Positions 6,401 to 52,335 of a stretch of DNA of 64,000 nucleotides are shown here, one piece after another. How positions within the stretch are numbered: position 1 is the first letter of the stretch; each line of letters opens with the position of its first letter. Position numbers and translations under genes: made by a program. The stretch is from Macrostomum lignano. Its lineage: Eukaryota. Below the pieces are notes generated by a model. That model was not told the DNA's origin. It made no database searches and saw only the letters and a list, made by a program, of their open reading frames with translations. The stretch lies in assembly GCA_002269645.1 (NCBI GenBank), contig NIVC01002459.1:62001-126000 (forward strand), given 5' to 3'.

Positions 6401-7989
6401 AGTCCCGAGGGCGCCCTGCTCTCCACCCTGAACGCTGCCCGCTACCTCAAAGCCGGCAAAATTGTTGAAATCCCCAAAGGCGGTCACCTGATGCTGGCCG
6501 CCCAGGACATCGAATTCTTCCCCGGATTCAACTTGGAAGGCTACCCGAACAGAGACAGCCTTCACTACAAAGACCTGTACGGCATCCAATCCGCTAAGAA
6601 CATCCTTCGCGGCACTCTGAGATACGCTGGCTACTCGAACTCAGCCTGGGGCCTCATCCAGCTGGGCCTGTTGTCCGATGCGCCCCACCCCAGCCTCCAT
6701 CCTGATGGCCCGGAGGTGACGTGGCGCCAGCTGCTCTGCTTTCTGGTCGGCAAGCCGCAGGACATCTTCGTCGGCACGCTGAAGGACGCCGTGTTCAACC
6801 GGCTTGGCAAGGATCGGGAGAAGTTCGAGTGCGTGGACGCTCTGGGCCTGTTCGAAGATGACGTGGTGAAGAAGCGCACCACTCCACTGGCTACTATCAG
6901 TACTCTGTTGTCGGAGAAGTTCAAGTACAGTAAGTACGAGGTCTGATGTTTAAAGTTGTTCTCAGCTGTTCTCAACTGTTCTCGGCCATTCTCATCTGTT
7001 CTCATCTGTTCTCAACTGTTCTCAACCGTTCTCAACTGTTCTCAGCTGTTCTTAACTGTTCTCAACTGTTCTCAACTGTTCTCAGCTGTTCTCAACTGCT
7101 TTCGGCCGTTCTCTACGGTTTTCAGCTGTTCTCAACTATTCTCAACTGTTCTCAACTGTTCTTAGCTGCTCTTAACTGTTCTCAGCTGTTCTCAGCTGTT
7201 CTCATCTGTTCTCAATTGTTCTCAACTGTTCTCAACTATTCTCAACGGTTTTCAGCTGTTCTCGGCTGTTCTCAACGGTTTTCAGCTGTTCTCATCTGTT
7301 CTCAACAGTTCTCAGCTGTTCTCAACTATTCTCAACTGTTCTAAACTGTTCTTAACTGTTCTCAACTGTTCTAAACTGTTCTAAACTGTTCTCAACTGTT
7401 CTAAGCTGTTTTCAGCTATACTACTTCACACTAGTTTTGGTCAGTAGGATAGTTGAGTTTTTCTCCAATAAAAACTAACGCCGCTAATTCTGTCGCTCCG
7501 CAGAGCCTCACGAGACCGACGTGGTGATAATGGTGCTGGACATATCCAGCAGGTTCCCCAATAACACCGCTGAGAACCACAAGATCAGCATGGTGAAGTA
7601 CGGCGACCCCAATGGCTATTCGGCTATGGCACTCACTGTGGGATATCCCACCGCCATTGTCACCAAGATGATTCTCGAAGGTGAGCGCCTTGAGTTTCTG
7701 TACAGCAGTTATGCTACCCCTCTGCCCCAGTGTACATTGCTCCCCTCTGCCCCAGTGTACATTGCTACCCCTCTGCCCCAGTGTACATTGCTCCCCTCTA
7801 CCCCAGAGTACATTGCTACCCCTTTACCATTGCTACACTCTCTCACCACCCGCTTCTCAACTTGCAGAGGAGATCCAGGACAAGGGCCTAGTGCTGCCCC
7901 TGAGCATGAACATCTACCGGCCCGTTCTGAAGCGACTCAAAGCCGAAGGCATCTCGGCGGTAGTCAAGACCACCGAGTACGACATCTGA
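407..7989 (+). CDS. AASS: Alpha-aminoadipic semialdehyde synthase (bifunctional lysine-ketoglutarate reductase / saccharopine dehydrogenase). 10 exons: 407-625, 723-1058, 2196-2682, 2793-2937, 3492-3603, 3976-4234, 5080-5434, 6328-6929, 7504-7680, 7868-7989 (2814 nt, 937 aa).
   Basis: Recognised motifs [121 protein letters not shown]. All introns are GT-AG with matching phases. The N-terminus [18 protein letters not shown] resembles a mitochondrial presequence. Confidence 0.97.
1995..2190. repeat. Irregular tandem repeat built on CTCGTAAACT / AAAGACAGT, AASS intron 2
   Basis: Repeated CTCGTAAACT runs up to the acceptor TTTCTCAG at 2195. Confidence 0.8.
2941..3455. repeat. (TCTG)n microsatellite with TCTTAGTG interruptions, AASS intron 4
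   Basis: Read directly; interruptions near 3117 and 3386. Confidence 0.97.
4241..4975. repeat. 12-bp minisatellite (CTCTGCTCTGTG)n, AASS intron 6
   Basis: Read directly; accounts for the SALC/CSVL/RAEH ORFs. Confidence 0.95.
5458..6300. repeat. 28-bp minisatellite (CAGTAGACATGCAGTGCCATCAGGCAGA)n, AASS intron 7
   Basis: Read directly; degenerates at the 3' end. Confidence 0.93.
6955..7415. repeat. 10-bp minisatellite (TTCTCAACTG/TTCTCAGCTG)n, AASS intron 8
   Basis: Read directly. Confidence 0.93.
7712..7835. repeat. 25-26-bp minisatellite (GCTACCCCTCTGCCCCAGTGTACATT), about 4.5 copies, AASS intron 9
   Basis: Read directly; inverted relative of the array at 8385. Confidence 0.9.
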
Positions 7990-8144
7990 GAGTGAGATTT
8001 GAGATGAAGACGAGGACAGAAAACTATTTATTTTGCTTTTAAGTTTTGGTCGAAGGAATCTTGATTTATGTTTTATCAATCCAATGTATTATTGGTTGGC
8101 TTAACGAAATCTCAATTGAACAAAAAATAGGTCTTTTTATATTT

Positions 8145-8150
8145 AATAAA
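8145..8150 (+). promoter_or_regulatory. Probable poly(A) signal of AASS
   Basis: AATAAA about 155 nt after the stop codon, followed by U-rich sequence. Confidence 0.55.
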
Positions 8151-8384
8151 AGCGTTACACAGTAAGACCTGCTCCCCTTCTGTGCTCAGCTGTCATACAA
8201 AGTTGTATTCTTTTTATAAACACAGTATTGATTTTTATCAAAAATTAGTGCGCGTTAAAGCTAATATGCACTTGTGCGTTCTCACTTGTACGTCCGGGGT
8301 ATAGATCCACATTATTCATACTTTTGTCTCTCTTCCTCTCATATCTCTATTTTTCTTGGTAAAATTTTAGCTAGCCGGGAAAGG

Positions 8385-8540
8385 AATGTACACCGGGGGA
8401 TAGAGAATTTGTAATGTACACTGGGAGGATAGAGGGGTTGGAATGTACACTAGGAGGGTAGAGGGGTTGTAATGTACACTGGGAGGATAGACAAGTTGGA
8501 ATGTACACTGGGAGGGTAGAGGGGCTGTAATGTACACTGG
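8385..8540. repeat. 29-bp minisatellite (AATGTACACTGGGAGGGTAGAGGGGTTGT), about 6 copies
   Basis: Unit starts at 8385, 8413, 8442, 8471, 8500, 8529. Confidence 0.9.
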
Positions 8541-49478: not shown

Positions 49479-50164
49479 ACTAATCGCCTACTCCCTACCC
49501 CTGTCCAGGTATCGCAGAGGTCCATGGCTCACAGGAGCAGCCCCCATACCGGATGGGCCACAGCCCCACCAGAGGCAGTAAAAACGACCACCCACCCCAT
49601 CCGCAATTCAATTTCGTTAGTCGCCCCGCAGACTGCACACGCAGTCGCTCAGCCTGGCAACCCGCCGCCCTCACACTAGATGCCCGCCACCCCAGTCAAC
49701 TCGTATTCATAATGAATAATTCATAACTCTTTAACAGCGGGCAACTCTAGTGAGGAAGCTGACAGTTTTAACAGAGAAGATGAAGCAGAGCGGAGCCTCG
49801 CTACGCAGAATCTTCCTGTTGTTGCTTCTCAAGCCGCAAGTAATTGTAAGATCTGTTTGCTGAAAATCTCTTTAAATAGAATCGTTTACCTTCGCCATAC
49901 AGGCTTTGAAATTGTAGTGCACAACTGAAGTGCATGTAAACAGGCAGAATGTGCTTATAATCGAGTCGCAGCTTTAACTGCCGAAATTATGAAGTGTGAT
50001 TGACTAAAGAGATTTGAGTGGATACTGAATTGCTGTTTGTACAGCCCAAGGTTGCTGTTGGCAGAAAAAGTGGGCTGCTGAACTTCATGACGGAAATTTG
50101 CGCAGAATGGGTTTAAAATAATTTCTGTCACAGCGCTGAAAGAAAAGTTGAAAAGTTGGATCGG

Positions 50165-50835
50165 CTTTTAGGGGAACTGGGGATGGCTTCCGAGGCGGAA
50201 CTGGGGATGGCTTCCGAGGCGGAACTAGGGATGGCTTCCGAGAGGGAACTAGGGATGGCTTCCGAGAGGGAACTAGGGATGGCTTCCGAGGCGGAACTGG
50301 GGATGGCTTCCGAGGCGGAACTAGGGATGGCTTCCGAGAGGGAACTGGGGATGGCTTCCGAGGGGGAACTGGGATGGCTTCCGAGGGGAAACTGGGATGG
50401 CTTCCGAGGGGAAACTGGGATGGCTTCCGAGGGGGAACTGGGATAGCTTCCGATGGGAAACTGGGATGGCTTCCGAGGGGGAACTGGGATGGCTTTCGAG
50501 GCGGAACTGGGAATGGCTTCCGAGGGCTTCTGAGGCGGAACTGTGGATGGCCTCCAAAGGGGGAACCAGGGATGGCTTCCGAGGTGGAACTGGGGATGGC
50601 TTCCGATGTGGAACTGGGGATGGCTTCCAAAACGGAACTTGGGATGGCTTCCGAGGGCTTCCAAGAGGGAACTGGGGATGGCTTCCGAGGGCTTCCGAGA
50701 GGGAACTTGGGATGGCTTCCGAGGGCTTCTGAGGCGGAACTGTGGATGGCTTCCAAAGGGGGAACCAGGGATGGCTTCCGAGGTGGAACTGGGGATAGCT
50801 TCCGAGGGGGGACTGGGGAGGTCTTCCGAGAGGGA
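50165..50835. repeat. About 24-bp minisatellite (GGGGATGGCTTCCGAGGCGGAACT)n
   Basis: Read directly. Confidence 0.92.
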
Positions 50836-51184
50836 ACCGGGATGGGTTCAGAATGGGAACTGGTTTTCAGAAAAACTGGAACAGAGGTTTTTGGCTTTTA
50901 CGGAAAATTTTACAGGGTTTAAAACGGGGAACTAAGAAAATTTAAGCAACGCTTTGAAGCGGAAGCAAAAATGTAGATATCGACTTTTATTATGAGCTGA
51001 AACTTGTCAAAAGTAAGAGTCAAAATAAGTTCAATAACGCAATTTATTTGTTTAATTTATAAATTCATCGTATTATCCTATGAAAATCACATTGCCTTGA
51101 AACAAAAATATTTTTTCTGAGTGCAATCTTAATACAATTAATAGAGGCTAACCAAGTTGAATTTAATTCATACAATAAACTGAT

Positions 51185-52335
51185 TGGGATAATGGGAATC
51201 GGATTGAGATTATGGGAATCGGGATTGAGATAGTGAGAATAAGGATTGGGATCATGGGAATCAGGATTGAGATAGTAGTGAGAATAAGGATTGGGATTAT
51301 GGGAATCGGGATTGAGATAGTGAGAATAAGGATTGGGATCATGGGAATCAGGATTGAGATAGTAGTGAGAATAAGGATTGGGATTATGGGAATCGGGATT
51401 GAGATAGTGAGAATAAGGATTGGGATCATGGGAATCGGGATTGAGATAGTGAGAATAAGGATTGGGATCATGGGAATCGGGATTGAGATAGTGAGAATAA
51501 GGATTGGGATTATGGGAATCGGGATTGAGATAGTGAGAATAAGGATTGGGATCATGGGAATCGGGATTGAGATAGTGAGAATAAGGATTGGGATTATGGG
51601 AATCGGGATTGAGATAGTGAGAATAAGGATTGGGATCATGGGAATCAGGATTGAGATAGTAGTGAGAATAAGGATTGGGATTATGGGAATCAGGATTGAG
51701 ATAGTAGTGAGAATAAGGATTGGGATTATGGGAATCGGGATTGAGATAGTGAGAATAAGGATTGGGATCATGGGAATCGGGATTGAGATAGTGAGAATAA
51801 GGATTGGGATTATGGGAATCGGGATTGAGATAGTGAGAATAAGGATTGGGATCATGGGAATCAGGATTGAGATAGTGAGAATAAGGATTGGGATTATGGG
51901 AATCAGGATTGAGATAGTGAGAATAAGGATTGGGATTATGGGAATCGGGATTGGGATAGTGAGAATAAGGATTGGGATTATGGGAATCGGGATTGAGATA
52001 GTGAGAATAAGGATTGGGATCATAGGAATCAGGATTGAGATAGTAGTGAGAATAAGGATTGGGATTATGGGAATCAGGATTGAGATAGTAGTGAGAATAA
52101 GGATTGGGATTATGGGAATCAGGATTGAGATAGTGAGAATAAGGATTGGGATTATGGGAATCGGGATTGGGATAGTGAGAATAAGGATTGGGATTATGGG
52201 AATCGGGATTGAGATAGTGAGAATAAGGATTGGGAATCAGGATTGAGATAGTGAGAATAAGGATTGGGATCATGGGAATCAGGATTGAGATTATGGGAAT
52301 CGGGATTGGGATTATGGGAATCGGAATGATGATTA
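51185..52335. repeat. 42-bp dimeric minisatellite (GGATTGGGATTATGGGAATCG + GGATTGAGATAGTGAGAATAA)n
   Basis: Read directly; reverse-complement relative of the 48601 array. Confidence 0.95.

Follow-up and report, generated by a model that had tools for sequence, protein, structure and literature searches.

Why should minisatellite arrays of one family stand in pairs, in opposite orientations, on either side of exons? The question is raised by a 64-kb window of the flatworm Macrostomum lignano (assembly Mlig_3_7; contig NIVC01002459.1, positions 62,001 to 126,000), which is the whole stretch of DNA analyzed here and in which an earlier reading of the letters (the original prediction) had noted four such pairs, referred to below as P1–P4. 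The pairs exist, and sibling arrays lie far closer to one another than chance would place them; inverted and direct neighbors are equally common in a wider sample. It is fairly probable that the pairs are local siblings, formed when bare array material was copied nearby in either orientation, and that the copies have evolved separately since.

Tandem arrays were called with Tandem Repeats Finder (TRF), which recovered all eight arrays where the original prediction had placed them:

7712–7837, plus strand: left arm of P1, a 25-mer minisatellite of about 4.4 copies
8383–8545, minus strand: right arm of P1, a 29-mer of about 5.5 copies, related to the left arm and inverted with respect to it
17975–18231, plus strand: left arm of P2, the 14-mer TTTACCACACCAGA in 18.4 copies, with degenerate units that reach back to 17901
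18609–19306, minus strand: right arm of P2, the identical 14-mer TTTACCACACCAGA, inverted, in 49.8 copies
42664–42926, plus strand: left arm of P3, a 32-mer in 7.8 copies with 97% internal identity
47632–48126, minus strand: right arm of P3, the 32-mer inverted, in 15.5 copies with 89% internal identity
48604–49478, plus strand: left arm of P4, the 21-mer ATAATCCCAATCCCGATTCCC in 41.7 copies, intergenic
51182–52364, minus strand: right arm of P4, a 42-mer consisting of the 21-mer and a 21-bp insert, in 27.9 copies

Fuzzy searches with the units matched only the two arms of the respective pair, on one strand per arm, which bears out the claim that the window has no other copies of these units. 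The contents that the pairs had been said to bracket were also confirmed (the last AASS exon for P1, exon 2 of a peptide gene for P2 and TRAF exons for P3), and P4 encloses no exon. The opposite-strand identity between arms in blastn alignments is 91–93% for P2, 84–85% for P3 and 84–85% for P4. P1 is a weak pair, in which the match between the arms misses the blastn cut-off of E=1e-5 within the window; the local score of its doubled consensuses is 30 (normalized, 0.58) in the inverted versus 7 (0.13) in the direct orientation, and a whole-genome search with its left arm retrieves the right arm at 75% identity (E=8e-9).

The nearness of sibling arrays was assessed in 264 kb of readable sequence, consisting of the window and 200 kb of contig C1463 (positions 1–200000). 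Family statistics were limited to the 119 arrays of these two stretches with a period of 12 or more. The similarity of units was expressed as raw normalized scores of doubled consensuses, with distant and inter-contig array pairs as the empirical background; shuffle z-scores were set aside because they are inflated in the reverse orientation, the strand-skewed composition of the arrays not being modeled. For array pairs separated by more than 20 kb or located on separate contigs, the frequency of same-family membership per pair is ~0.0013 in direct and 0.0002 in inverted orientation. The 354 array pairs with gaps of 0.1–6 kb include 4 direct and 6 inverted same-family pairs versus 0.47 and 0.06 expected, i.e., 10 in total versus 0.53 expected (Poisson p for either orientation, 3e-10). 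Local (<6 kb) same-family pairs are therefore enriched ~20-fold, and the nearness of sibling arrays is far above chance.

Orientation shows no comparable bias. Array-versus-array blastn comparison gives 5 inverted and 5–6 direct local events. The window holds 4 inverted and 0–1 direct local pairs, and C1463 holds a single inverted cluster (117571 versus 119393 and 121965) and 4–5 direct pairs (16502/19576, 119393/121965, 133084/137439, 175302/176626, 54803/59108). A genome-wide view was obtained by coordinate-only searches with eight array families, covering ~200 loci including homeologs; ~40 candidate loci were scored per family, and diverged partners such as C1463:117571 are missed by these searches. 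They add an inverted pair of a 22-mer family on C422 (+439631–440062, −441892–442685), an inverted 113-bp fragment 12 bp from its main array on C1510, C167, and C3104, and two or three direct cases (C1185, C38, C1463/C1306/C1307). Overall, the independent local pairs, a small sample of ~14, divide into ~7 inverted and 7 direct (95% confidence interval of the inverted fraction, 0.23–0.77), and those outside the window into ~3 inverted and 6–7 direct. In a two-sided binomial test, the 4:0 excess of inverted pairs in the window yields p=0.125. As the window was flagged for its inverted pattern and the wider sample is ~1:1, there is no evidence for an orientation rule. The expectation that same-family neighbors should be both closer and more often inverted than controls has thus been borne out in its first part only (~20-fold, in the 264 kb) and is not supported in its second (~7:7). 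Likewise, the proposal that a local inverted-copy mechanism seeds arrays next to their siblings stands with respect to locality (~20-fold at <6 kb), and falls with respect to inversion because direct pairs are equally common.

Same-family arrays, whether neighboring or on different contigs, have array material only in common. When the inner and outer flanks (120 bp each) of the four pairs were aligned locally, inverted similarity was no better than that of shuffles; no extension of the palindromes into the spacers of the four pairs was found, and neither flank similarity among the readable copies of local or dispersed same-family arrays nor transposon termini around such arrays were found. The families themselves are dispersed to different degrees. 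Besides the loci of the window, there are ~8 genomic loci for P2 and ~5 for P3, and at least 11 for P1 and at least 28 for P4 (350 candidate loci). Arrays on C2206 and C138 that were retrieved in the P2-family search are homeologs of C1463:21–31 kb and not independent loci. A 28-mer family (window 54869–55750; C1463:158062–158348 and 171018–171588) has 1381 candidate loci at ~90% identity, of which 40 were scored, and a 16-mer family has 352 candidate loci. Carriage of the 28-mer arrays by a long terminal repeat (LTR) was considered, as copies lie ~12.7–13 kb apart on C1463 and C222, and was rejected for lack of flank similarity; the dispersal of this family seems to involve array material alone.

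These observations bear directly on the idea that each pair is a Foldback-type transposon, with inverted arms of tandem subrepeats and a loop in which host exons have been captured. The anatomy is superficially that of FB, Galileo, and Tetris, which also have inverted arms of tandem subunits around a variable middle (PMC4079207; PMC3573991). Tetris and similar Foldback elements have a terminal flanking domain and are bordered by target-site duplications of 8–10 bp (PMC4079207). In the present case, all other loci examined for the four families carry arrays of a single orientation, and genome searches with each arm found two-armed structures at this locus and its homeologs only, and none that was dispersed. 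The outer ends have no terminal domain or flank that is conserved, and there is no demonstrable target-site duplication: the array edges are degenerate (in P2, for example, the units decay from 17975 back to 17901) and hide the true ends, and no flank match was found. The arms of a pair are unequal in length and in unit period (25 versus 29 bp in P1, 21 versus 42 bp in P4). Furthermore, the loops consist of single-copy exons that are correctly oriented within intact genes, and a protein search with the P2 exon retrieved no paralog, its one match being the annotated protein to which it belongs, P0009, recorded on three contigs. The suggestion of Foldback-like arms that capture exons was therefore rejected, and the chance that it applies to these pairs is minute.

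A different kind of doubt concerns the reality of the pairs, which might be chance neighbors of abundant families or artefacts of a PacBio-based polyploid assembly. The dispersal of the P1 and P4 families lends this some weight, as do the redundant and chimeric scaffolds that are present in Mlig_3_7 (PMC10733133) and a large inverted two-array block on C1306 for which a mis-join is possible. Yet even families with 350–1400 loci in 764 Mb would yield well under 0.02 chance neighbors within 5 kb per array, whereas four pairs occur among the 34 arrays of the window, and ~0.5 same-family neighbors are expected from distant and inter-contig pairs versus 10 observed. Moreover, the arms are 7–25% diverged and lie in the interior of a long contig, and two or three further homeologous contigs carry differing versions of them, a pattern of divergence and recurrence that an artefact of palindromic reads would not show. 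Chance or artefact is therefore very improbable as an account of the pairs, and assembly error as their origin was rejected, since three or four homeologous contigs keep them.

The homeologous copies also date the pairs. The genome of M. lignano comprises the subgenomes S, L1, and L2 (PMC10733133), and duplicated chromosomes have been reported in its DV1 line (PMC5730564). P1–P4 recur on the collinear homeologous contigs C4616, C3453, C3707, C3344, and C3452; the copies of the region differ by a few percent in unique DNA and have all kept the pairs. In contrast to this constancy of the pairs, the lengths of the P2 arms differ among the copies (left arm, 257/367/366/193 bp; right arm, 698/231/231/217 bp). 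Because the homeologs keep the pairs with differing arm lengths, the pairs are older than the divergence of the three subgenomes, and the arms change in length separately. Comparison within the window leads to the same view. Identity within arms is 97% and 89% in P3 and 92% and 91% in P4, in both cases higher than the 84–85% between arms, and in P1 the identity between arms (~75%) is likewise lower than that within them; in P2, the 91–93% between arms is about the same as the unit-to-unit identity within each arm (90–93%). The higher internal identity of P3 and P4 and the doubled period of the right arm of P4 indicate that the arms evolve independently.

We favor the following mechanism. A short piece of an array, without its flanks, would occasionally be copied into a nearby break, usually at a distance of a few hundred bp to ~5 kb and in either orientation, and each copy would then expand, contract, and homogenize independently through slippage or unequal exchange. 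The inverted pairs would be the half of these copying events that landed in reverse. At the molecular level, pieces or circles of arrays may have reinserted, or stalled forks may have undergone short template switches. A simple inversion with a breakpoint inside an array was considered and rejected for P1–P3, in which the exons between the arms run in the same direction as the rest of their genes. Most introns and intergenic spacers of this region are filled with arrays, so that pairs formed by local copying inevitably bracket exons.

The genome is saturated with minisatellites. TRF called ~48 distinct tandem arrays in the window, amounting to 34% of the 64 kb, and C1463:1–200000 is 38% array; for the whole Mlig_3_7 assembly, simple and tandem repeats are given as 15% of the genome (PMC5730564). 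The nearest precedents are satellites of insects. In the Drosophila simulans clade, euchromatic satellites have appeared at new loci without transposon flanks, and reinsertion of extrachromosomal circular DNA (eccDNA) and interlocus gene conversion have been proposed as the means (PMC7403614); in Tribolium, satellites have reportedly spread in gene-rich regions (PMC11610590). As in the arrays described here, the Drosophila satellites (Rsp-like, 1.688; PMC7403614) and, reportedly, those of Tribolium (PMC11610590) occupy many loci without shared flanks, and new short arrays arise near existing ones, each homogenizing alone. The routes proposed for them, namely, fragment or circle reinsertion, gene conversion, and microhomology-mediated repair, are indifferent to orientation. 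The M. lignano arrays differ in that their units are 14–42 bp long, versus 100–360 bp, in that they make up a third of the gene-region sequence and occur in almost every intron, and in that the closed-monomer mark and the junction signature are not seen at their eroded edges. Most likely, minisatellites have here spread locally and without their flanks, in a genome whose wealth of tandem repeats was known before. The recurrent architecture and undescribed system that had been envisaged find no support, and the candidacy does not hold up.

Several observations weigh against local seeding that is blind to orientation. No junction signature of any mechanism was found at the arrays. The copy numbers given by TRF for P1–P4 (4.4, 5.5, 18.4, 49.8, 7.8, 15.5, 41.7, and 27.9) are non-integer, so that the mark of a closed monomer circle (PMC7403614) is not seen, on edges that are eroded and have been altered since insertion. 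The ratio of inverted to direct pairs is 4:0 or 4:1 in the window versus 1:5 in C1463 (Fisher p=0.08; window versus rest, p=0.07–0.08), the direct count is perhaps inflated because the splitting of one array can yield a direct pair, and a moderate orientation bias, of up to ~75% inverted, is possible in a sample of ~14 pairs. In addition, the two pairs with the smallest gaps, 378 and 546 bp, are inverted ones, and the 113-bp fragment on C1510, C167, and C3104 lies inverted only 12 bp from its parent array, all of which fits fold-back priming or template switching.

An orientation-specific local mechanism of that kind, i.e., fold-back priming at a break or an opposite-strand template switch at a fork stalled in an array, would account for the inversion of all four pairs of the window. 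It is also consistent with the inverted pair of the 22-mer family on C422 and with local inverted duplications of unique DNA in C1463, such as 187175–187433 / 187641–187900 at 98% identity. However, direct pairs outnumber inverted ones outside the flagged window (~6–7 versus 3). Such events normally co-copy adjacent unique sequence, yet the similarity of the flanks is nil; adjacent unique sequence was not found in the inverted copies, in which nothing beyond the arrays is shared. In addition, the spacers of 0.4–4.7 kb hold intact exons and not duplicated material. As a general explanation, the mechanism is unlikely, and a fold-back or template-switch component acting at very short range is possible.

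The remaining question is whether the inverted arms do anything at the RNA level, which depends on their position relative to the genes of the region:

7868–7989, plus strand: last AASS exon, enclosed by P1, with the end of the Sacchrp_dh_C domain and the stop codon TGA at 7987–7989
18231–18551, minus strand: exon 2 of an annotated 109-aa secreted protein (P0009), enclosed by P2 and containing nearly all of the coding sequence
45297–45809, minus strand: TRAF RING exon, the first coding exon, enclosed by P3
44138–44428, minus strand: TRAF middle exon, enclosed by P3
42961–43302, minus strand: TRAF zf-TRAF exon, enclosed by P3
42060–42623 and 41283–41732, minus strand: TRAF MATH exons, beyond the left arm of P3
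43360–44128 and 44429–45169: unrelated arrays between the TRAF exons
46057–47479: 79-mer array upstream of the TRAF exons
54809–54444, 54076–53714 and 53298–52453, minus strand: exons of a caspase gene

The AASS gene extends on the plus strand from ~188 to 7989 and has matches to AlaDh_PNT_N and Sacchrp_dh_C. The left arm of P1 makes up 67% of its last intron (7681–7867, 187 nt), and introns in this region appear to be built largely from arrays. The polyadenylation signal of AASS (AATAAA at 8145–8150) is inside P1, and the right arm lies ~235 bp beyond it. The left arm of P3 is intronic, lying in TRAF between the exon for zf-TRAF and those for MATH, and the right arm is ~1.8 kb upstream of the first coding exon. 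P4 is located between the stop codon of the caspase gene and the 5′ region of TRAF. The caspase open reading frame (ORF; 52450–53304) is 99% identical to an M. lignano protein, and the right arm of P4 begins 86 bp past its stop codon (52450–52452). No AATAAA occurs on the minus strand of 51182–52452, between the stop codon and the end of the 1.18-kb array of the 42-mer, and the first AATAAA-like signals are beyond the array, at ~51047 and 50985. Because the array starts so close to the stop codon and no AATAAA precedes it, the 3′ untranslated region (UTR) of the caspase gene probably contains the whole right minisatellite of P4.

At P2, both arms are intronic, the right one in the intron upstream of exon 2. 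The encoded 109-aa protein has a start that resembles a signal peptide and a KRRGK site. The exon has the splice sites ccgccgcag/G (3′) and AG/GTAAAT (5′; slashes mark the exon boundary), and on the minus strand the donor AG/GTAAAT is provided by the first unit of the left array (18220–18236). The donor-like GGTAAAT recurs 18 times in the downstream arm and the acceptor-like CACACCAG 50 times in the upstream arm, so that by their sequence the P2 arrays read as long runs of cryptic splice sites. Folding of the transcribed strand predicts a stem of ~260 bp around exon 2, at −616 kcal/mol versus −296 for shuffles (z=−38). Provided that one transcript contains both introns, pairing of the arms is physically likely according to this model, and a side effect at the RNA level, in the form of a 260-bp stem that encloses the exon, is possible or even probable.

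P2 is the natural starting point for the view that inverted arms are kept for pairing in pre-mRNA, either for back-splicing or exon skipping or for the supply of double-stranded RNA (dsRNA) to pathways of editing or endogenous small interfering RNAs (endo-siRNAs). Its arms flank exon 2 from both sides, the predicted stem is long and stable, and elsewhere intronic inverted repeats of 30–40 nt reportedly suffice for circularization (PMC4201285). However, this intron–exon–intron geometry is found in 1 of the 4 pairs. In P1, the poly(A) signal precedes the right arm, and the arms enclose the final exon, which has no downstream donor for back-splicing; in P3, the right arm is upstream of the first coding exon; and P4 has no enclosed exon. 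Because only P2 has both arms in introns that flank an exon, a general RNA-pairing system is unsupported. Complementarity between arms, 84–85% in P3 and P4 and weak (~75%) in P1, is also being eroded: in these three pairs, identity between arms (75–85%) is lower than identity within arms, and the right arm of P4 has gained 21 bp per unit with the doubling of its period, which indicates that complementarity is decaying and not conserved. The arm lengths of the homeologs vary freely, and direct sibling pairs, which are incapable of pairing, are equally common. Maintenance of the arms for RNA pairing is accordingly improbable, and the minisatellite-based pairing system that had been proposed is not borne out by the four pairs.

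P2 alone resembles the intronic inverted repeats of the type of Alu pairs, in which complementary repeats reportedly lie in both flanking introns (PMC4201285; PMC13019027); here, the arms are arrays and not dispersed elements, three of the four pairs lack the geometry, and complementarity is not conserved. We assign no function to the pairs.

Long inverted repeats that are sometimes internally tandem, and that give long dsRNA if transcribed through, are also a feature of the hairpin-RNA (hpRNA) loci of Drosophila, which reportedly came to light as sources of endo-siRNAs in work by Okamura et al. and Czech et al. in 2008. The hpRNA loci are dedicated transcripts with defined mRNA targets. The arms of P1–P4 are instead intronic, intergenic, or probably part of a 3′ UTR, and the only sequences that they resemble are other non-coding arrays.

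A bolder extension of local seeding may also be considered. M. lignano might have an active, flank-less route of minisatellite spread in which fragments or circles of arrays reinsert preferentially in cis and seed introns and spacers with families of >1000 loci at ~90% identity; inverted copies that span an exon, as in P2, would then create dsRNA stems bearing splice-site-like motifs and could reshape splicing or generate circular or small RNAs at many genes. We regard this scenario as speculative and quite unlikely.

What the locus does indicate is that related minisatellites of M. lignano cluster within a few kb, ~20-fold over background, with only array material shared, and this clustering points to a cis-acting, transposon-independent founding of new arrays. 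Such repeats hamper both the assembly and the gene models of this species. For scans of other genomes, the locus is a caution, as geometry alone will place inverted repeats on both sides of exons where arrays saturate the genome. At P2, the arms form a near-perfect inverted repeat of 260 bp in the introns around an exon, and this exon takes its splice donor from the repeat; the locus thus offers a clean case in which to study circularization or skipping driven by repeats, in a flatworm that is ready for transgenesis.

Further repeats were noted in the course of the analysis. Purine- or pyrimidine-rich arrays at 9291–9606, 11790–12717, 13249–14543, and 14967–15235, on alternating strands, form a possible fifth set; their motifs are related (CCTCTCTAC; TAGAGA..GAGATG; CCATCTCTCC; TATCTA). 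They may be an older sibling set, of a complexity too low for reliable scoring. One tetranucleotide repeat occurs four times in the window, as GTCT/TGTC on the plus strand at 2942–3455 and 16236–17014 and as ACAG/GACA at 54021–54431 and 56136–56780. These two copies per orientation have no obvious local pairing, and the repeat is an abundant microsatellite that is also frequent in C1463 (37583, 78338, 95289, 124399, 127527, and 194689).

Elsewhere in the assembly, the two-array block of the 16-mer family on C1306 is present twice in inverted orientation (227474–230597, minus strand; 241145–244269, plus strand), ~10.5 kb apart, with an internal gap of 1754–1755 bp in both copies; either a large segment was duplicated here in inverted orientation or homeologous contigs were mis-joined. 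On C1463, the inverted duplication of non-array DNA at 187175–187433 / 187641–187900 abuts a 53-mer array, and the sequences at 60036–60718 / 62166–63775 are like terminal inverted repeats of ~700 bp belonging to a 3.7-kb element.

The only array-free stretch of the window is a 17-kb block at 19400–36700, which has no tandem repeats and contains a multi-exon gene on the minus strand. Its long ORFs are located at 22789–24489 (with a transmembrane-like segment at the end), 28135–29142 (cysteine-rich), and 31196–32623, and a Pfam search of the large ORFs of the block gave no match. In the aligned part of the block (20354–23570), homeologs are 97–98% identical, versus 86–94% in the array-rich flanks. 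An ORF at 33273–33866 (plus strand) has weak matches to Asp_protease_2, a retroviral-type aspartyl protease, at E=4e-4, below the Pfam cut-off, and is probably the remnant of a retroelement. Rfam and tRNA scans of the window gave no match.

The block also contains one copy of a short dispersed repeat of 80–110 bp, the copies of which are 80–97% identical and occur in both orientations:

21082–21217 of the window
14550–14672, 32398–32458, 89044–89125, 124677–124800, 147147–147270 and 182115–182271 of C1463

The repeat matches no tRNA and no known RNA family, and may be an element similar to a miniature inverted-repeat transposable element (MITE) or a short interspersed nuclear element (SINE). 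Finally, a six-frame search of the assembly gives at least 162 matches to the caspase domain (PF00656), many of them tandemly clustered, and the caspase family is strongly expanded in M. lignano even when its three subgenomes are allowed for.

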